DNA of 64,000 nt from Basidiobolus meristosporus CBS 931.73 (lineage: Eukaryota; Fungi; Basidiobolomycota). The stretch is from the NCBI GenBank assembly GCA_002104905.1, contig MCFE01000432.1:1-64000 (forward strand). The letters are read 5' to 3'. The notes below the pieces were generated by a model. The model saw only the letters and a list, made by a program, of their open reading frames with translations. It made no database searches and was not told where the DNA came from. Position numbers and translations under genes: made by a program. Positions 15,834 through 43,735 of the stretch are shown piece after piece (position 1 is the stretch's first letter; each line of letters starts with the position of its first letter).

Positions 15834-18565
15834 ATGAGAATCTCAGCCTCTACTCTACTTTTCGTTATCTCAACTGCCTGCACCGTTGGGGCCGCAACAG
15901 CAGGAGCAGCAGGTGCGTATGATACCACAGATCTTTCCAATGGATCAGGAGGTTCTGGTGGTAACGGCGGTGGTAATAGTGCCGGGACTTATGGCGCTGG
16001 CAACGGCAGCGACGGTAATGGTGGAGGTGCCGGTGGAAATGGCGGAGGCAATGGCGGCAATGGTGGTGGTAATGGTGCTGGATCTTATGGCACCGGAAAT
16101 GGAGGAAATGGCGGAGGTAGTGGTGGCAATGGAGGAGGCGCTGGCGGAAACGGCAGTGGAAATGGTGGAGGAAATGGCGGCAATGGTGGCGGTAACGGCT
16201 CTGGAGCTTACGATTCTGGTAATAGTGGCAATGGTGGAGGTGCTGGCGGAAACGGCGGAGGAAACGGTGGTAATGGAGGAGGTGCCGGTGGTAACGGAGG
16301 AGGAAATGGTGGTAACGGAGGAGGTGCTGGAGCCTACGACTCTGGTAACGGTGGCAATGGAGGAGGTGCTGGCGGAAACGGTGGTGGAAATGGCGGCGGT
16401 AACGGCTCTGGAGCTTATGACACCGGAAACGGCGGAGGAAGCGGTGGCAACGGAGGAGGAAGCGGTGGTAACGGAGGAGGAAATGGTGCTGGAGCCTACG
16501 ACTCTGGTAACGGTGGCAATGGAGGAGGTGCTGGCGGAAACGGCGGAGGAAATGGCGGCGGTAATGGCTCTGGAGCTTATGACACCGGAAACGGCGGAGG
16601 AAACGGTGGCAACGGAGGAGGAAATGGTGGTAACGGAGGAGGTGCTGGAGCCTACGACTCTGGTAACGGTGGCAATGGAGGAGGTGCTGGCGGAAACGGT
16701 GGTGGAATGGCGGCGGTAACGGCTCTGGAGCTTATGACACCGGAAACGGCGGAGGAAGCGGTGGCAACGGAGGAGGAAGCGGTGGTAACGGAGGAGGAAA
16801 TGGTGCTGGAGCCTACGACTCTGGTAACGGTGGCAATGGAGGAGGTGCTGGCGGAAACGGCGGAGGAAATGGCGGCGGTAATGGCTCTGGAGCTTATGAC
16901 ACCGGAAACGGCGGAGGAAACGGTGGCAACGGAGGAGGAAATGGTGGTAACGGAGGAGGTGCTGGAGCCTACGACTCTGGTAACGGTGGCAATGGAGGAG
17001 GTGCTGGCGGAAACGGCGGAGGAAATGGCGGCGGTAACGGCTCTGGAGCTTATGACACCGGAAACGGCGGAGGAAACGGTGGCAACGGAGGAGGAAACGG
17101 TGGCAACGGAGGAGGAAATGGTGGCAACGGAGGAGGAAATGGTGGTAACGGAGGAGGTGCTGGAGCCTACGACTCTGGTAACGGTGGCAATGGTGGTGGT
17201 GCTGGCGGAAACGGCGGAGGCAATGGTGGCAACGGAGGAGGAAATGGTGCTGGAGCCTACGACTCTGGTAACGGTGGCAATGGAGGAGGTGCTGGCGGAA
17301 ACGGCGGAGGAAATGGCGGCGGTAACGGCTCTGGAGCTTATGACACCGGAAACGGCGGAGGAAACGGTGGCAACGGAGGAGGAAACGGTGGCAACGGAGG
17401 AGGAAATGGTGGCAACGGAGGAGGAAATGGTGGTAACGGAGGAGGTGCTGGAGCCTACGACTCTGGTAACGGTGGCAATGGTGGTGGTGCTGGCGGAAAC
17501 GGCGGAGGCAATGGTGGCAACGGAGGAGGAAATGGTGCTGGAGCCTACGACTCTGGTAACGGTGGCAATGGAGGAGGTGCTGGCGGAAACGGCGGAGGAA
17601 ATGGCGGCGGTAACGGCTCTGGAGCTTATGACACCGGAAACGGCGGAGGAAACGGTGGCAACGGAGGAGGAAATGGTGGCAACGGAGGAGGAAATGGTGC
17701 TGGAGCCTACGACTCTGGTAACGGTGGCAATGGTGGTGGTGCTGGTGGAAACGGCGGAGGAAACGGTGGTAATGGAGGAGGTGCCGGTGGTAACGGAGGA
17801 GGAAGCGGTGGTAACGGAGGAGGAAATGGTGGTAACGGAGGAGGTGCTGGAGCCTACGACTCTGGTAACGGTGGCAATGGTGGTGGTGCTGGCGGAAACG
17901 GCGGAGGCAATGGTGGCAACGGAGGAGGAAATGGTGCTGGAGCCTACGACTCTGGTAACGGTGGCAATGGAGGAGGTGCTGGCGGAAACGGCGGAGGAAA
18001 TGGCGGCGGTAACGGCTCTGGAGCTTATGACACCGGAAACGGCGGAGGAAACGGTGGCAACGGAGGAGGAAATGGTGGCAACGGAGGAGGAAATGGTGGT
18101 AACGGAGGAGGTGCTGGAGCCTACGACTCTGGTAACGGTGGCAATGGAGGAGGTGCTGGCGGAAACGGCGGAGGAAATGGCGGCGGTAACGGCTCTGGAG
18201 CTTATGACACCGGAAACGGCGGAGGAAACGGTGGCAACGGAGGAGGAAGCGGTGGTAACGGAGGAGGCAATGGTGGCAACGGAGGAGGAAATGGTGCTGG
18301 AGCCTACGACTCTGGTAACGGTGGCAATGGAGGAGGTGCTGGCGGAAACGGTGGTGGAAATGGCGGCGGTAACGGCTCTGGAGCTTATGGCACCGGAAAC
18401 GGCGGAGGAAGCGGTGGCAACGGAGGAGGAAGCGGTGGTAACGGTGGCAATGGAGGTAATGCTGGCGGTAATGGTGGAGGTGCTGGTGGAAATGGGCAAT
18501 ATGATACCTCGGATCATAGCGGAAACATCCTTGGCACTTTGTACAAGAGATTCTTTGGGAACTAG
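15834..18565 (+). CDS. Secreted Gly/Asn-rich repeat protein (~910 aa if repaired) with a 1-nt frameshift at ~16707
   Basis: Signal peptide MRISASTLLFVISTACTVGAA; GGN/GGG/AGG repeats punctuated by GAYDSG/GAYDTG; the Gly frame resumes after the shift and ends QYDTSDHSGNILGTLYKRFFGN* (TAG 18563-18565). Confidence 0.8.
15930..18500. repeat. Coding minisatellite array (roughly two dozen near-identical Tyr-punctuated modules)
   Basis: Recurrent gcctacgactctggtaacggtggcaatgg and gcttatgacaccggaaacggcggagga units. Confidence 0.95.
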
Positions 18566-32755: not shown

Positions 32756-34980
32756 TCCCAACTTCGACCACCCATTCCCATCCCCATCTCCATCTCCACC
32801 ACCACACACCATCTTATTTTCTTTGTAAAATCATCCTTTGCACCACCAATAAATCCACTTCTGGTTACTCGTGATCCGTTCGGTTGCTGTACCGATTCCG
32901 ACCGACCGAAATCAAACAGGAAGTCAAGTGCCACGGAGGCCAATCAAGGCAGATCTGTTTTCATAGATAGACTTGGTCTCCCTAACTTGTTCGATTGGGT
33001 TGAAGATTTGGTCAGCAACCCGCTTCTACTACGGATCTTCACTGTGTCACTAGTTCACGTTCATTTGGTGTGCAAGACCTGTGACAAACGTATATAACTG
33101 GCTCCACTTATCAACGACTCAGCTCCACGTTACATTGATCTTGATGGAGACTTTCATCTGGCACTCAATCTATCTCAAGCCATTCGATCGAATGTGCTAT
33201 CAAATTTACAAATGACCCAGGTACCGCTAATGTCTTGGTAGGGCTGGGGGCCCACCAATGACTTCATCCCCAGTATTCACATCGACAGCGATTTTTTCTG
33301 CTTTGTCTGAGCCACATCTCTTAAACAGTTGGGTTCGCGGGTCATGATCCCCAGCAACGTGCGGAAAGTTTCACGCCATGGATCTTTCTTGTCATCACCT
33401 CTGGTGGACTACTTTCTCACGACTCCGCCTATCCCGGACGATAGATGGTAACAATCAATCGGTCTAAACAGGTCTCCCACGGTTTAAAGGTTGATATTGA
33501 CTCTAGGTTCGACAATGAAAATTTTTGTCCCGGTACGATGCGGGTCACATTCTCGGCATGCAGGTCGCCAGCATGGTGGAGCAAACGCCACGCCCAAAGC
33601 GGAATCCCCCATGACAGGTTCATACTCGTATACTGGAATATACTGCATAATAATTGCGCTGAATAAATAACTACGCATGTAATACCTTCCACTGAGTGAC
33701 CAGGGTTTTTTTTTTTCTGGGCAGAACTTTGGCTTACCTCGTAGATGATGTGGGTCGTATTTGGAAGTGAATGGTTTAGTACTCAAATATTGATCCATGG
33801 ACACTGCATGTAAAGCACCGATGTCTAGACTTCAAGAATTGGTTAGCCAAGTACAACCCTGTAGTACTGATAACTAAAGCATAATTTCGAGTTGGCTAAT
33901 GAGAATGTCCGCCTAACTGCTGAATTCGCAACTGTAATACCAACTCTATTCAGAAACAGGGAGGTAACATAGTTTCGGCCACTATCAGATTTCGAATGTG
34001 GTAATAGGAATACAGGAGGCACATACGATATGGCAGATCCACTATTCAACTGGAAATCTAACTTCGACCCAGTGAGGATTCGAGATATCGATCGCGGTTT
34101 CTCCTCAGCGAAACATGAAATTCTTGATCGATCGGTTAATCGGTTACTGAATCTCCCTCATTGGTGATCAAAGTTACCATACGGCAACATGTGTGAAAGG
34201 TTTTGGAAAAATCACAACTCGTGGGGAAGTTCATGATTCGTGGACATCTGGAAATCAGCACAAAACCGTGTGAAGGATATGGAGCGTGCAACGATCAGAT
34301 CCCAACCACAACACCACCCCTATCTACCTGATGCTTCCCAAACTAGAGCCAGTGAGGCCTCGTCGATACAACCAACATGCAAGCAGGCTGAAGTCATCGC
34401 CTGTGCAAACGTTATCCAATACATCAACACTTCGCTATAAGTGGTGCAAATTCTAATGGAAATAGAAATCCGTCCAAACCAATTAACATTCCATCTTCCA
34501 AATCGAAAAGCCTTCCTCATGACCATATACCATATGGTTTCCTAATCTGAAGTAGTCGTGACTTATTGGTCAATCTACGAAATTCATCATGAGACTCGAT
34601 GGAACCTTCACTCACCAAAGTAATGTTGAGTCAACGCGAATTTCTAAATGTGGATTGTCAGTGGTATATTGGTGCTACTTATTTGGTTACCGTAAGATAA
34701 GGAGTCAGATGACAACTAGCTATCGTGCTATTGTTCAGCAAATGAAGAGCCGCGCTGCTCTCTAAGTGAATTTAAGATAGATCAATATAATTGCTGAGGG
34801 TGAAAAAGGAAATGGCACATACCGAGGTTATCGGGAATTGGTCAGCGAAAGTATAAAATGTCTTGGACCTCTGGATGGAATTAGTATCTTTCAGTTTCAT
34901 TCCCCAACACAGTATTCGGGCCTTTGAAAAAATCCTTTGCGCTTGACCTTCTACCCGATTACTTCACACCGAACTTAATC

Positions 34981-36231
34981 ATGTCAAAATACGACGAAAA
35001 AACCCTCGACTATGAGGCCAACATGGAGAACGAAACCGGAAGAACCAGCTCTTCCTTCGGAGCTTACTTCAACATTGTGTGCGTTATTGCTGGTATGGGT
35101 GTTCTACAGATGGCTTCTGCATTCAGACAAAGCGGGTGGTTTGGTGCTGTTATCACAGTATTCTGCTGCCTCCTCTGTATCTACACCGGTCACCTGCTCG
35201 TAAAATGCCTATATTTCGATGGGAAAACCAGATTGCCGGGCTATTCAGCCATTGGACAAGCGGCCTTTGGCAAATTCGGAAGATACATGGTAGAGGGTTT
35301 CTTGTTCTGTTTCTACTTCGGAGTTGCGTGCATCTTCATCATCTTGATCAGTAAAGATCTGTCAGAGTTGTTCGAACTGGTGAACATTCACCTGAACTTG
35401 AAGATCTGGACCATCATTGCCGCCGTCATTATCTGGATTCCATTTGTGGCCTTCAAGGCCATGAAGGAAGTCGAAATCCTCGCACTGTTCGGTACCCTAG
35501 CCACCGCATTTACTGTTGTGGTGATCGTCGTTGTTGGTATCATGGATCTGCCAAAAAACAAGATGCAAACTCACGAATTCATCCAACCCTCCGGCTTGCC
35601 TATTGCCCTGGCCTCCATCAGCTTGTCATTCGGTGGTAGCCCAGTATTCCCCGCAGTAGAGAAGACCATGAAACGCCCCAAGTCCTGGACCATGGTTCTG
35701 TCCTTTGCCATGGGAACCGCCCTGATTCTGTACATCCTTGCCGGCGTCTTCGGTTACCTCGTTTACGGAAACTCCGTTCAATCACCCATCTTCACCAATT
35801 TGACCAAAAACGGACTTACCGTTGCAGCAATGATTGCCATGACCTTCCACATCATGTTTGCTGCTCCCATCCTGCTGATCAGTTTCTCACTGGAAGTGGA
35901 GAAGTGGTTGAAAATCACCGACAACTACATGACAAAGTCCAAACAGGTTGTCAGCCGAGTTTGCATGAGAACTGCATTGATGGTGGTGTTCTGCTTGATC
36001 TCCATGTTTGTCCCAGCATTCGGAGACTTCATGTCACTTGTCGGAGCCCTCACCAACTGCCAAATCATCTTCGTGTTCCCAGTCGTCTTCTACCTGAAGC
36101 TCTACGGATGGAGAAACATCCGCTGGTACGAGTTGATCCTCTGTGCCATCATCATTGTTGTTGGCATGGTTAGCTGCGTCCTGGGCACCATTGATGCCAT
36201 CAAGAGTTTGAAGGCAACTTTGTCCGGTTAA
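34981..36231 (+). CDS. Amino-acid transporter (Aa_trans, Avt1-like), intronless
   Basis: SSFGAYFNIVCVIAGMGVL; SLSFGGSPVFPAVEKTMKRP; about 11 hydrophobic segments. Confidence 0.93.
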   Translation: MSKYDEKTLDYEANMENETGRTSSSFGAYFNIVCVIAGMGVLQMASAFRQSGWFGAVITVFCCLLCIYTGHLLVKCLYFDGKTRLPGYSAIGQAAFGKFGRYMVEGFLFCFYFGVACIFIILISKDLSELFELVNIHLNLKIWTIIAAVIIWIPFVAFKAMKEVEILALFGTLATAFTVVVIVVVGIMDLPKNKMQTHEFIQPSGLPIALASISLSFGGSPVFPAVEKTMKRPKSWTMVLSFAMGTALILYILAGVFGYLVYGNSVQSPIFTNLTKNGLTVAAMIAMTFHIMFAAPILLISFSLEVEKWLKITDNYMTKSKQVVSRVCMRTALMVVFCLISMFVPAFGDFMSLVGALTNCQIIFVFPVVFYLKLYGWRNIRWYELILCAIIIVVGMVSCVLGTIDAIKSLKATLSG

Positions 36232-36698: not shown

Positions 36699-37967
36699 CT
36701 AGTTGGACAAAGCAGTGATCAAATTTTTCACTGCATCAATGGTGCCCAGGACGCAGCTAACCATGCCAACAACAATGATGATGGCACAGAGGATCAACTC
36801 GTACCAGCGGATGTTTCTCCATCCGTAGAGCTTCAGATAGAAGACGACTGGGAACACGAAGATGATCTGGCAGTTGGTGAGGGCTCCGACAAGTGACATG
36901 AAGTCTCCGAATGCTGGGACAAACATCGACACCAAGGCGAACAGAACCATTAGTCCGGTGCGCAACACTGGGCGGACTATCCTTTGCTTTGTTTGTGACA
37001 TGCACTCGTCGTTGATACGAAGCCACTTCTCGATATCAAGGGAAAAGCTGATCAACAGAATGGGCGCTGCGAACAATACGTGGATGGTGATGGCGGCGGT
37101 GGCAGCGAAGGTCAGGGGGGCGCCTTGGGGGAAATTCTGGAAGATCGGGGAATTGACCGAGTTTCCGTAAGCTAGGTATCCAATCACGCCAGCCAACATA
37201 TACAAAACCAGGGTGGTGACCATGGCGCAGGTCAGGATCTTTGTCCAGGATTTAGGGGTCTTCATGGTTTTTTCGACGGCTGGGAAGACGGGACTACCTC
37301 CAAACGACAGACTGATGGATGCTAGAGCGATTGGGATCCCGGAAACATGAACGAATTCGTGTTTGTATTGCTTGCTCTCGTCCAAGTGGCCAATGCCGAC
37401 AATGAGAATGACCACCACTGTGAAGACGGTGGCGAGGGTACCGAACACAGCCAAGATCTCAACCTCCTTCATGGTCTTGAAGATCACGAATGGCACCCAG
37501 ATAACAACCGCGGCAATGATGGTCCATACTTTGAGAGACAAGTGTACGCTAGTCTGGTCGATCATGTCCTTCATGTTGATACCAATCAACATAATGAAGG
37601 CACATCCAACGCCGAAGTAGAAGCACAAAAGAAACACCTCGACTAGATATTTTCCGAATTTTCCAAAGGCCGCCTCGCCAATAGCAGAATAGCCGGAAAG
37701 TCTGCTCTTGCCGTCGTAGTATAAGCATTTGACCAAAACGTGACCGGTGTAGATGCAGAGGAAGCAAGAAAATACGGTAAGAAAAGCAGCGAACCAGCCA
37801 CTTTGGTTGAAGGCATAGGCCATCTGAACGACACCCATACCAGCAATGACGCATACGACATTGAAGTAAGCGCCGAAGTTGGAGCTAGTGCCAGCATGAG
37901 GATCGTTATTCACCTCAAACGAAAGGTCTTTTTCGTAGGTGTTCTTTTCGTCAAAATCAGTTGACAT
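36699..37967 (-). CDS. Amino-acid transporter (Aa_trans, Avt1-like), convergent paralog of 34981-36231
   Basis: Same motifs; C-terminal ~65 aa identical to the neighbour. Confidence 0.93.
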   Translation of the reverse strand: MSTDFDEKNTYEKDLSFEVNNDPHAGTSSNFGAYFNVVCVIAGMGVVQMAYAFNQSGWFAAFLTVFSCFLCIYTGHVLVKCLYYDGKSRLSGYSAIGEAAFGKFGKYLVEVFLLCFYFGVGCAFIMLIGINMKDMIDQTSVHLSLKVWTIIAAVVIWVPFVIFKTMKEVEILAVFGTLATVFTVVVILIVGIGHLDESKQYKHEFVHVSGIPIALASISLSFGGSPVFPAVEKTMKTPKSWTKILTCAMVTTLVLYMLAGVIGYLAYGNSVNSPIFQNFPQGAPLTFAATAAITIHVLFAAPILLISFSLDIEKWLRINDECMSQTKQRIVRPVLRTGLMVLFALVSMFVPAFGDFMSLVGALTNCQIIFVFPVVFYLKLYGWRNIRWYELILCAIIIVVGMVSCVLGTIDAVKNLITALSN

Positions 37968-39123: not shown

Positions 39124-40316
39124 ATGGACAAACTCAAGGAAGTAAGTTCACTATTCCATCACCAGGGGCCCCTTCATATTTTTTATGTTTTGAGGATAGC
39201 AGCTTTGATGCGTATTGATTTGGGCTTTCTACTACACAACATACTGCAGTAATTTGGATGTCTTCATCCACTGCTGGTCCACACTTTCCATTAGCAGCGT
39301 GTTGACTTTTTTGCATCTATAGAGAATCAACACACTTCGTGCCGAGGCTGATGCAGCTGCCACTCGCGCCGAAGAAGCGGAAGCCCTAGTGAAGAAGTTG
39401 AACGCCACTCAACTTGACCATGACCAAGAAATCATTGGTTTCCAGAAGAAGATTCAATTGTTGGAAGAACAGTTGGACAAAGCAGAAGAGAGATTGGTCG
39501 AGTCCAAGGCCTCTAACGAAGCAACTGAAGACCATAGAAGCCTGAACGATTCCTTGAGTAAGAAGTTGTCCATGGTGGAGGACAAGTTGGAGGAGACCGA
39601 AACCAAACTTAAGGAGGCCACCGAGAAGTAAGTGTTATTGTGCGGGTGAAGCTCCCTCACTCTTATCAATGGCGGTGTGGCTCACCCTAAATCTTCTTGG
39701 TAGACTTCGTGACATCGATTTGAAGGCAGAGCAGGCTGAGCGTAAAGTCCAGCAACTCGAGAACGAGAAGATTGAACTGGAGAACAAGTCAGTATATTTG
39801 TGTGGTATCTTATCATTTGTGGAATGGAGCCTAACGCTTTAGCAATTAGACTCCAAGAAGCACCCAACCCTAATGTCAACAACCACGAGCGGGACCAAGA
39901 GCTTATCGCACTACAAAGTAAGCTGAGCATGTTGCAAATCGAGCTGGATCGTACCGAAGAAAAACTCGAGAGCGCCAAATCCACTCGTGTTGGCGAAGAT
40001 CAAAGCAAGACTGAGATCGAGGCTAGAGACAAGAAGATTGGCTTGCTTGAGGATGATCTCGAGGAAACCAAGAACAAGTTGCGTGAATCCAATGAGAAGT
40101 GAGTGTGCTCTAATACGATCCCTTCAACAACCGTGTCCTTACTGTCTTTTTAGAACTCGTGACCTGGACCTGAAGTGTGAGCAGCTAGAGCGCCGTGTAC
40201 AACAGATGGAGAACGAGAAAGACAAGTTGGAGAAGAAGTTGGAGGAGGCACAGGAGAAATACAACGAGGTTCGCAAGGAGCTGGATGATACTTTGAAGAC
40301 AATCGAAGAGATGTAA
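39124..40316 (+). CDS. Tropomyosin with internal duplication (5 exons, 272 aa; 161 aa if exons 3 and 4 are skipped)
   Basis: MDKLKE|RINTLRAEADAA N-terminus typical of fungal tropomyosin; exons 39124-39141, 39323-39627, 39704-39787, 39850-40098, 40154-40316; heptad coiled coil; ends LDDTLKTIEEM*. Confidence 0.9.
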
Positions 40317-40554
40317 ACCCCCTATTTTGTATCCTGCCAAGAAGCATTCATACTCCTGCTTATTTTAAATCATCGCCACATCCACTCCGCACCAACCGAT
40401 GTAAATAAACCTATGTTTGTTGATGCGATCGAAGCAAGCACCAGAAGTATGCAGTTCAAGGGATCTTTATATATCAATTTATCCAAGGAAATCGAAGGGA
40501 CATGTATGGTAGGGATGTGTAATGGCGAATTCTAGTGGGCCAAGGTCATGAGGC

Positions 40555-42855
40555 TCATTCCGAAGCGGTGGAGATGAATTCAATGATGCTTGGTGCTGAG
40601 CGCTCATTGATGTTGAATGGACCTGGTGGACTGCTTTGGGCCAGGGTGATATATGCCTTTCGCAGGTCAACACATTTCTTGCCACAAAATACCCCCGATT
40701 AGTCTCGTGACTGAGGTAGAAACTTGCAAGCATAAACATCTTACCTCCTCGTCGTCTAGCTCCTTTGTTCCGATCTTGCACATTTTCTCGGCCCAATCGT
40801 TCACCAATTTCAGCACTTCGGGGGACTGACTGTTGATTCCAAAGGACTGGACTTCGGTCAAAAACTTCACCCCTTGGGTATGTGCAAAGATGCTCCACTC
40901 GGTACAGCGAATAAAGAAGTCCTCCACGAGGATCTTTTGTAACTTTCTGGATCCCAAAATTACATTGATCGACTGAACCAGCAGAGAGAGTATAGACTGG
41001 AACAGATCTTCGTAGCTGCTAGGGTTTGTAGGAAGCACCTGAAAGAGAACGGGTGCGATTCGATTGAAGGCAACCAGATCGCTCTCGTAGAGACGATCCA
41101 ATGCATATTGGCAGAAAATCTGGTCGAAACGGCCGCGTCAGTGTGGATGGAGATGTCTGGTAAGCTGCATGAAAAATCACCTTTCTCGCCACTTCGCTCC
41201 TCCCCAAGACGGCAATCTCGCTCTCGGTCAACGCCTCCGCCAACACCTCTTCATCCTCCACGGCGTTGTTTTTCTTCGCGTGCTCCTCGCGGTGGATGTC
41301 GTCGGTAATCAGGCCCACCATGGCCGAGTAGAATTTGGACGTGACCTCCTTGTCAACCTTGGGGATCTTGAAGCTCCTCGTCTGAATCATGATTCTGGCA
41401 TGGTATCCCAGATTCAGGATAGTGGAGGTCCAAATGATGTTTCTTTCAGACTGAAATCAAAAATGTGGGTGAGGCTTTGCTGCGGCGTAGGGGCTGAAAT
41501 GGTGATTACCTTGGGCTCAAGCTGCTTGGATGCTGCCGTGTGAAGTAAATGCAATAGCTGAAGAGAGAGCATATTTGCGGTGAACGGGCCAAGCAGTATC
41601 ATGGCAATATCGCTAAGAACGTATCGGGTTACTCATCGAGATGGCGGTGTGAAACATACGCGAGGGGATCTATACCCATATACTGGATCCTCCTTCACCA
41701 CACCGTCAAAGAACTTCTGCATATCGCGCACTCGTCGTTCGTCCATCGATTGTGTGCGAATACATGCGTCCAGCGCCCAGACAAGCTGATGACATGGATC
41801 CTTTTCATAAATCTACAGAGATTCCGGGGGGTGAGTACCGGGGGATTCAACGCAGCCTCGCACTCCAACTTACCTCGTTTACATCCGCCTCATGCATAGC
41901 CATTAACAGGTCGAATCTCAAAGTACAATAGTTGGTGTAACCGGTGCTAAGAAACAAGGTTCTCAAAAACCCTAAAACTAGATCATATAAAGTAATATTT
42001 GTCCCGATTACATGAACCAAATCTTTGATGGTTGAATGCTCGCGGCTGGGCCGATGTGTTAGAAAGGTCGCTCGCAGGAGCCAAACGGGAAACCCATCTC
42101 ACCGAAGTTTGGTTATCTTCACTACGTCCTTGTGTCTCAACTCCCTTCCTATTCCATAATGGTCCATGTCGTAATGGTATCGCTGTAGCTTCGGGACAAC
42201 GTAATCACTGAAGAGCGTATTATCATTCAACCACAGTTGACGTTTCACTTCCACGGGACATTCAGCGTAAACCTCGGCTTGTTGTGATATACTCTCGAGA
42301 ACATCCTTTGGAATACGCTCTGGGTGTTTACTCAGCAGTTTCATAGGGACTTCTCTTAACTCCTTCAAGTGAATGTACGTCAAAGTTTTCTTCAGAAGCT
42401 TCTGGAACCTAAAGTGCATTTGGTTGAGCCTTTGGGTGCGTTGTATATCTCCACTATGTAGGATGAATCCAATAATACCTCTCTTCGTCCAGATCCTCTT
42501 TCTGTATTTTTTCCAGCATCCGAGTTTTCATCGAATCCAGAAACGCGCCATGCATCTCAGCACGGCTGTATTCCAGATGGTCAAGCAGCGGATAGATTGC
42601 CTGTATGTTTGGTAGTAAAAGAAGAAAGCAAAAAAGGATCATAGGTCATTTAAATCTATTGACGAATAGTGTGGTATGTTGCAAGCTTGAAAACAGTATA
42701 ACAATTTGACGAAAGGTATCATCCAATCCATATTTCGCGCGAATTTCTGCTATAACTATCTTGGGGTCATTCAGCGACAGGGAATTCTTCACATGTTGCC
42801 CACCTTCCACACCAACTAAATAGTGTTTGGGCTCGGTCTCCATTGGATCTGACAT
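40555..42855 (-). CDS. NELFB: Negative elongation factor B (COBRA1) homolog, multi-exon
   Basis: YAECPVEVKRQLWLNDNTLFSDYVVPKLQRY, LRSRLLMALHE and DPCHQLVWALDACIRTQSMDERRVRDMQKFFDGV match my recollection of human NELF-B blocks (YRACAVEVKRQIWQDNQALFGDEV; DPCHKFTWCLDACIRER). Confidence 0.85.
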
Positions 42856-43336: not shown

Positions 43337-43735
43337 ATGTCTGGCAAAGCTGGTGGTAAGAGCGGTAAAGCTGTAAGCGGTGGTTCCAAGTCCCGTTCCT
43401 CAAAGGCCGGACTTCAGTTCCCAGTCGGTCGTATCCATCGTCACTTGCGTAAGGGCAACTACTCCCAGCGTATTGCTGCTGGTGCACCAGTCTACTTGGC
43501 TGCCGTATTGGAGTACCTCGCGGCCGAAATCCTCGAGTTGGCAGGAAACGCCGCCCGCGACAACAAGAAGACAAGAATCATTCCTCGTCACTTGCAACTG
43601 GCCATCAGAAACGATGAAGAGTTGAACAAACTGCTGTCAAACGTCACTATTGCACAAGGTGGTGTTCTGCCCAACATTCATGGATCGCTTCTTCCCAAGA
43701 AGTCCAAGAAGGAAGGCGAATCCCAAGAGCTGTAA
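43337..43735 (+). CDS. HTA: Histone H2A with C-terminal SQEL (H2A.X-type) motif
   Basis: [17 protein letters not shown]…[41 protein letters not shown]…ESQEL*; ATG at 43337. Confidence 0.98.

Follow-up and report, generated by a model that had tools for sequence, protein, structure and literature searches.

The gene on the forward strand at positions 39124-40316 of Basidiobolus meristosporus contig MCFE01000432.1 is best read as a protein-coding tropomyosin gene whose normal product is most likely a 272-residue form, the outcome of an old internal duplication. The evidence supports the added 111-residue cassette as a real and old within-gene duplication that arose independently of animal tropomyosins. 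The protein is an ordinary member of the tropomyosin family with an unusual, lineage-specific lengthening by three periods and a proline hinge, and not a new kind of system. As a gene call the 272-residue model is already known, with the public annotation placing a gene on exactly this interval and giving it a 272-residue product for which no Pfam hit is on record.

Gene model, family membership and neighbourhood

The window, meaning the whole 64,000-nt stretch of the contig that was analysed, contains the gene as five exons separated by introns that all begin with GT and end with AG. Joined together, exons 1 to 5 give 819 nt and 272 residues with the sole stop codon at the end, and the joining of exons 1, 2 and 5 gives 486 nt and 161 residues. 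These values, which an earlier note on this DNA had proposed, are all exact on recomputation. The common phase 2 that it gave for introns 2 to 4 is confirmed from the exon borders, and the APNPN motif that it placed at the junction is found at residues 140-144. The features of the locus are as follows:

39124-39141 (+): exon 1, 18 nt, encoding MDKLKE, the canonical tropomyosin N-terminus; an 18-nt first exon is also present at the B. ranarum loci L003 and L001
39142-39322 (+): intron 1, 181 nt, phase 0, GTAAGT..TAG; the B. ranarum 161-residue gene has an intron at the equal position
39323-39627 (+): exon 2, 305 nt, equal in size to exon 2 of the B. ranarum 161-residue gene
39628-39703 (+): intron 2, 76 nt, phase 2; its position and phase are those of the only internal intron of the 161-residue paralogue
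39704-39787 (+): exon 3, 84 nt, the first cassette exon, a copy of the start of exon 5
39788-39849 (+): intron 3, 62 nt, phase 2, GTCAGT..CTAAC..TAG, 4-5 codons before the duplication junction
39850-40098 (+): exon 4, 249 nt, the second cassette exon, copied from the latter part of exon 2 and since diverged
39860-39874 (+): APNPN codons, the proline hinge at the duplication junction
40099-40153 (+): intron 4, 55 nt, phase 2, by position the duplicated copy of intron 2
40154-40316 (+): exon 5, 163 nt including the stop codon, the C-terminal end, equal in size to the last exon of the B. ranarum 161-residue gene
39401-39862 (+): duplicated unit A, residues 33-140, spanning introns 2 and 3
39872-40250 (+): duplicated unit B, residues 144-251, spanning intron 4
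40404-40409 (+): AATAAA, a likely polyadenylation signal read from the sequence, 88 nt after the stop codon

Judged by its position and phase, intron 2 appears to be the ancestral intron. Translation of exon 3 on into intron 3 runs into a stop codon, and intron 3 is therefore needed. An ATG within intron 3 (39824-39849) lies in frame with exon 4 in an open reading frame at 39800-40102, from which a transcript starting in or retaining intron 3 could give a product of about 145 residues with a non-canonical N-terminus; the 17-codon open stretch involved is not unusual by chance.

The family scan, the database searches and the folding were carried out exon by exon, and the joined products were used only for lengths and for comparison with themselves and with relatives. 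For exons 2, 3, 4 and 5 alike, the highest-scoring Pfam family is tropomyosin (PF00261). Exons 2 and 5 score 61.8 and 46.7 bits, above the curated cutoff of 38.6 bits, and exons 3 and 4, scanned alone, score 25.0 and 23.2 bits and fall below it. Exon 3 matches profile positions 190-215 and exon 5 positions 191-242 of 242, while exon 2 lines up colinearly with residues 7-107 of 8puz, a solved structure of the S. pombe tropomyosin Cdc8. The N-terminal start and the C-terminal end are each present once, with the duplication confined to residues 33-140 and 144-251. The heptad register is continuous within each of these units, and the coiled coil is interrupted at residues 141-153. The total length agrees with growth by whole actin periods of about 36-39 residues, 272 being 161 + 3 x 37.0, an agreement of arithmetic only.

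The surroundings of the gene hold several further features. Two tail-to-tail amino-acid transporter genes (PF01490) lie at 34924-36231 (+) and 36699-37967 (-), and their last 260 nt are 90% identical as against 72-74% elsewhere, with about 65 C-terminal residues nearly the same, a pattern that looks like gene conversion between inverted paralogues. A tract of G-rich tandem repeats occupies about 2.4 kb at 16030-18450; its nested periods are 21, 42, 156 and 288 nt, its GC content is 0.60 and its GC skew 0.48, and its repeat unit would encode a Gly/Asn-rich repeat protein on the forward strand. A COBRA1/NELF-B homologue (40555-42855, -) is convergent with the tropomyosin gene and is followed by a histone H2A gene (43337-43735, +). 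In B. ranarum the H2A protein is identical and its gene adjoins COBRA1 and HIT genes on small contigs; as H2A stands beside COBRA1 in both species, the local gene order is conserved.

The internal duplication and the origin of intron 3

Set against each other at an offset of exactly 111 residues, the two halves of the product give a gap-free alignment that matches residues 33-134 with 143-244 and has a BLOSUM62 score of 240, compared with 64 +/- 9 (maximum 95) for plain shuffles and 80 +/- 10 (maximum 117, the best of 500) for shuffles that preserve the heptads. Along this diagonal, residues 33-140 and 144-251 are 45% identical with a score of 260. Both of the resemblances that had been noticed by eye, that of exon 4 to the second part of exon 2 and that of exon 3 to the start of exon 5, belong to this one ungapped alignment. 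About 420 fungal tropomyosin-like proteins were fetched and those of at least 150 residues were scanned for internal repeats; the strongest repeat among them is that of the 272-residue product, and ordinary 161-residue proteins give self-scores of 67-85 at offsets of 35, 38, 59 or 80. Identity between the two copies is 56%, 70% and 38% at first, second and third codon positions, respectively, and the duplication must be old because third positions are saturated. At the DNA level the start of exon 3 against the start of exon 5 is the only part still alignable between the copies, and a sequence comparison of introns 2 and 4 finds no alignable similarity. An assembly artefact was considered as the source of the duplicate and was rejected, the copies being only 45% identical. 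The 333-nt cassette is open in the frame that is used and closed in the other two, an openness that occurs in 0.2% of shuffled or random sequences, and it retains a clean a/d heptad pattern. The open frame, the heptads and the helical fold of the cassette are signs that point to long-term purifying selection on its translation.

Three relevant genes are present in the B. ranarum genome (GCA_040143965.1). P0012 (KAK9762412.1) is a 161-residue protein from a separate gene with exons of 18, 305 and 163 nt, the sizes of B. meristosporus exons 1, 2 and 5. One intron of this gene follows codon 6 in phase 0, the other interrupts the EK|LR site in phase 2, and both positions agree with those in B. meristosporus. 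Its protein is 51% identical to B. meristosporus exon 2, and exon 3 is 72% identical to its residues 108-136. The layout of the P0012 gene is the unduplicated plan. P0001, annotated as 'tropomyosin-2, variant 2', is a 157-residue protein with 77% identity that covers exons 1-3 and then continues into the intron at the intron-3 codon; directly after its exon-2 part it retains 22 of the 28 exon-3 residues. A second species thus has, in a second gene, cassette exon 3 together with its junction to exon 2 and with intron 3. The syntenic orthologue is P0003 on L001, which has the same transporter upstream and about 90% identity over the comparable residues, and whose contig ends inside exon 2. The public 66-residue 'tropomyosin-2' model for P0003 (L001 3908-4329, JASJQH010001072.1) begins within intron 1, at a false ATG, and finishes in unrelated sequence. 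No long Basidiobolus protein is found in the search with P0001 (proteins of 86-275 residues), a weak absence in a library that apparently lacks B. meristosporus' own proteins. None is found in the search with a 246-residue Tulasnella protein (135-430 residues), which returns only basidiomycete proteins, mostly of 161-162 residues. Loci reached through the identical neighbouring histone H2A are only short B. ranarum contigs that do not carry a tropomyosin gene.

In a tree of the units, unit B is most similar to unit A of the same gene, with a branch length of 1.17 compared to 0.11 for unit A, and identity to P0012 is 35.5% for unit B and 52% for unit A. Unit B has thus diverged at a much higher rate than unit A. 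For four of the five other fungal sequences compared, unit B shares 20-23 residues with unit A and 8-13 with the other fungus, while for the fifth, the basidiomycete P0004, the counts are 20 and 17. A tree in which units A and B and P0001 are held together is not rejected (p-AU 0.46). With regard to whether the duplication or the split of long and short genes came earlier, shared positions divide 14 to 10, which is not significant, and the tree favours neither order. The gene structure indicates that the long genes descend from the short three-exon form. The proposal that this fungus took its own route to a longer tropomyosin is upheld by the unduplicated B. ranarum gene of 18, 305 and 163 nt and by the fact that unit B is closest to unit A.

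The long gene would accordingly trace back to an ancestor of three exons (18, 305 and 163 nt) encoding a standard 161-residue fungal tropomyosin, in which a tandem duplication would have started midway through exon 2, near codon 30, taken in the sole internal intron and stopped near codon 140, early in the last exon. Such an event would lengthen the coding sequence by 333 bases (111 codons) and double the intron, and the expected layout immediately afterwards would be exon 2, intron, a fused 333-nt exon, intron and last exon, with intron 3 then splitting the fused exon into 84 and 249 nt. Intron 3 sits 4-5 codons ahead of the point at which the exon-5 pattern (KLxEA) gives way to that of exon 2, and the matching site has no intron in either exon 5 or the 161-residue paralogue. 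Intron 3 should therefore be new, gained at or soon after the duplication and before the two long genes separated, which makes the locus a dated example of intron gain no more than five codons from a duplication junction. Comparison of intron 3 with exon 5, exon 2 and intron 4 finds no similarity above shuffles, and against intron 2 only a marginal score. A derivation of intron 3 from duplicated exon sequence was rejected for want of an above-shuffle match to exons 2 and 5. Residues 1-32 at one end of the protein and the tail beyond about residue 251 at the other would have stayed single, and since the duplication spared them, the head-to-tail overlap for polymerising on actin should be kept. 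The Met-Asp start is likely a substrate for N-terminal acetylation, as in yeast tropomyosins.

The product, its hinge and alternative readings

Tropomyosins of 284, 248 and 161 residues span seven, six and four actins, and the step in length per actin is 38 residues in yeast (Tpm1 199 versus Tpm2 161) and 36 residues in human (284 versus 248). The 111 residues of the cassette are 3 x 37, and 37 falls between these two values. On the basis of the three added 37-residue periods, a dimer of the 272-residue form would cover about seven actin subunits rather than four, as the earlier note had suggested; that suggestion fits as period arithmetic only, and a dimer of this length may bind seven actins in register.

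The architecture at the duplication junction bears on how such a protein would behave. Pro141 and Pro143 lie at the junction, and by a simple home-made register score none of the 13 residues that separate A140 from L154 occupies a core position. The heptad register jumps from 3 to 6 at this point because 111 is 15 x 7 + 6. The paired prolines and the three-position register shift mean that the coiled coil, unlike that of animal tropomyosin, is interrupted, and a short Pro-Asn-Pro hinge would separate an N-terminal segment of about 140 residues from a C-terminal segment of about 130. Folded alone, exon 4 is modelled as one long helix from its residue 7 (mean pLDDT 90.9), with its first six residues (LQEAPN, L137-N142) non-helical and the helix starting at Pro143. 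In this model the helix may be broken over just two or three residues, which would make the break a hinge instead of an extended linker.

The 272-residue protein could also be made with a hinge that uncouples its halves, giving two tethered short rods instead of one seven-actin rod, for example for bridging or bending between filaments or for binding other partners. The prolines, the register shift, the 13 residues that lack a core position and the non-helical LQEAPN all favour such an uncoupling, as does the faster divergence of unit B seen in both its branch length and its identity to P0012. It nevertheless seems unlikely, in view of an added length that is an exact multiple of a plausible actin period, the resumption of the modelled helix at Pro143, and the stretch of unit A that matches the junction (residues 33-42), which is likewise poor in core positions. 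Regulated skipping of the cassette, by which one gene would produce animal-like isoforms of 272 residues (all exons) and 161 residues (exon 2 joined to exon 5), draws on the exon lengths and phases. The introns flanking exons 3 and 4 are all in phase 2, so that the exon 2-exon 5 join is in frame and gives exactly 161 residues, and exons 3 and 4 are each divisible by three, so that forms of 189 and 244 residues are in frame as well. However, the equal phase of introns 2 and 4 and the divisibility of the 333-nt cassette by three follow from the duplication itself, which leaves the phase of intron 3 as the only independent agreement, at odds of roughly 1 in 3. Furthermore, the length of the cassette-region introns, 55-76 nt, suits intron-by-intron recognition, and fungi seldom skip exons when introns are recognised in this way. 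The 161-residue form has a gene of its own in B. ranarum, and P0001 of that species, the only variant annotated for the long gene, keeps intron 3 and skips no exon. Protein searches return no 161-residue protein identical to exons 1, 2 and 5, a weak negative in libraries that apparently lack this genome's proteins. Skipping is on these grounds quite improbable; if true, it would yield seven- and four-actin tropomyosins from one gene and would mean that a fungus has independently arrived at an animal-style sorting of length isoforms.

The cassette could also be a dead duplicate, with exons 3 and 4 never entering mature mRNA and only the 161-residue protein being made. Nothing positive speaks for this beyond the canonical length obtained on skipping, and it can be given hardly any credence. 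The cassette frame has stayed open despite saturation at synonymous sites, the six cassette splice sites are all canonical, the heptad pattern is kept, and tropomyosin remains the best Pfam family for exons 3 and 4. In addition, an annotated B. ranarum product carries a conserved exon 3 attached to exon 2, and the public gene model includes the cassette. The presumed inclusion of exons 3 and 4 in the mRNA is thus based on gene models together with signs of selection.

Comparison with other tropomyosins

Published work describes fungal tropomyosins of 161 or 199 residues, which span four or five actins, and a long animal form of 284 residues, which spans seven. A limited check of the literature, in which not all journals were covered, found no work on Basidiobolus tropomyosin or on long fungal tropomyosins. 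The 161-residue proteins, including S. pombe Cdc8, S. cerevisiae Tpm2 and P0012, share with the B. meristosporus product the PF00261 family, the MDK/MEK start and the C-terminal end. Relative to this plan, the B. meristosporus protein has 111 extra residues between positions 140 and 141 and a proline hinge, and its gene has two extra introns. It provides a natural test case for the effect of length and of a built-in hinge on actin binding, and for the sorting of filaments when a 161-residue paralogue shares the cell.

S. cerevisiae Tpm1, with 199 residues, equals the 161-residue Tpm2 plus an internal duplication of 38 residues. It resembles the B. meristosporus case in being fungal, in having an internal duplication alongside a 161-residue paralogue that is kept, and in growing by increments of about one actin period. 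It differs in having gained one period (+38 residues, five actins), whereas B. meristosporus gained three at once (+111 residues, about seven actins). The S. cerevisiae TPM1 gene is intronless.

A full-library search with exon 2 gives 191 matches, and the best 150 are mostly proteins of about 161 residues, fragments, or models with unrelated extensions. Among the matches listed there is one other protein with a strong internal repeat, KAJ3339805.1 (P0040) of Gonapodya sp. JEL0774, which counted from its MDKIR start has 237 residues, or 161 + 2 x 38, and strong self-similarity at an offset of 38. Its locus (L004 1501-3296, JADIIX010000054.1) encodes a tropomyosin with two extra 38-residue periods, and the 120-residue non-coiled N-terminal extension of the model is probably a modelling error. 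Gonapodya is likewise an early-diverging fungus with a lengthened tropomyosin. In contrast to the single three-period block of Basidiobolus, its repeats are tandem single periods, and it represents an unrelated event in another phylum.

The animal tropomyosins (TPM1-4; 248 and 284 residues) are similar to the B. meristosporus protein in overall length and in belonging to PF00261, and the start of exon 2 aligns with the vertebrate tropomyosin start in a lower-scoring stretch of the best solved match. The B. meristosporus protein owes its length to a separate and recognisable duplication, however, and its coiled coil is interrupted. Animal isoforms are generated by alternative promoters and mutually exclusive exons, devices for which there is no evidence at the Basidiobolus locus. 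Here a fungus has come near to animal tropomyosin length in one recognisable step, of exactly three periods and with both polymerising ends untouched. Taken with the one period added in Tpm1 and the two in Gonapodya, the three added in Basidiobolus suggest that tropomyosin length changes in whole actin periods.
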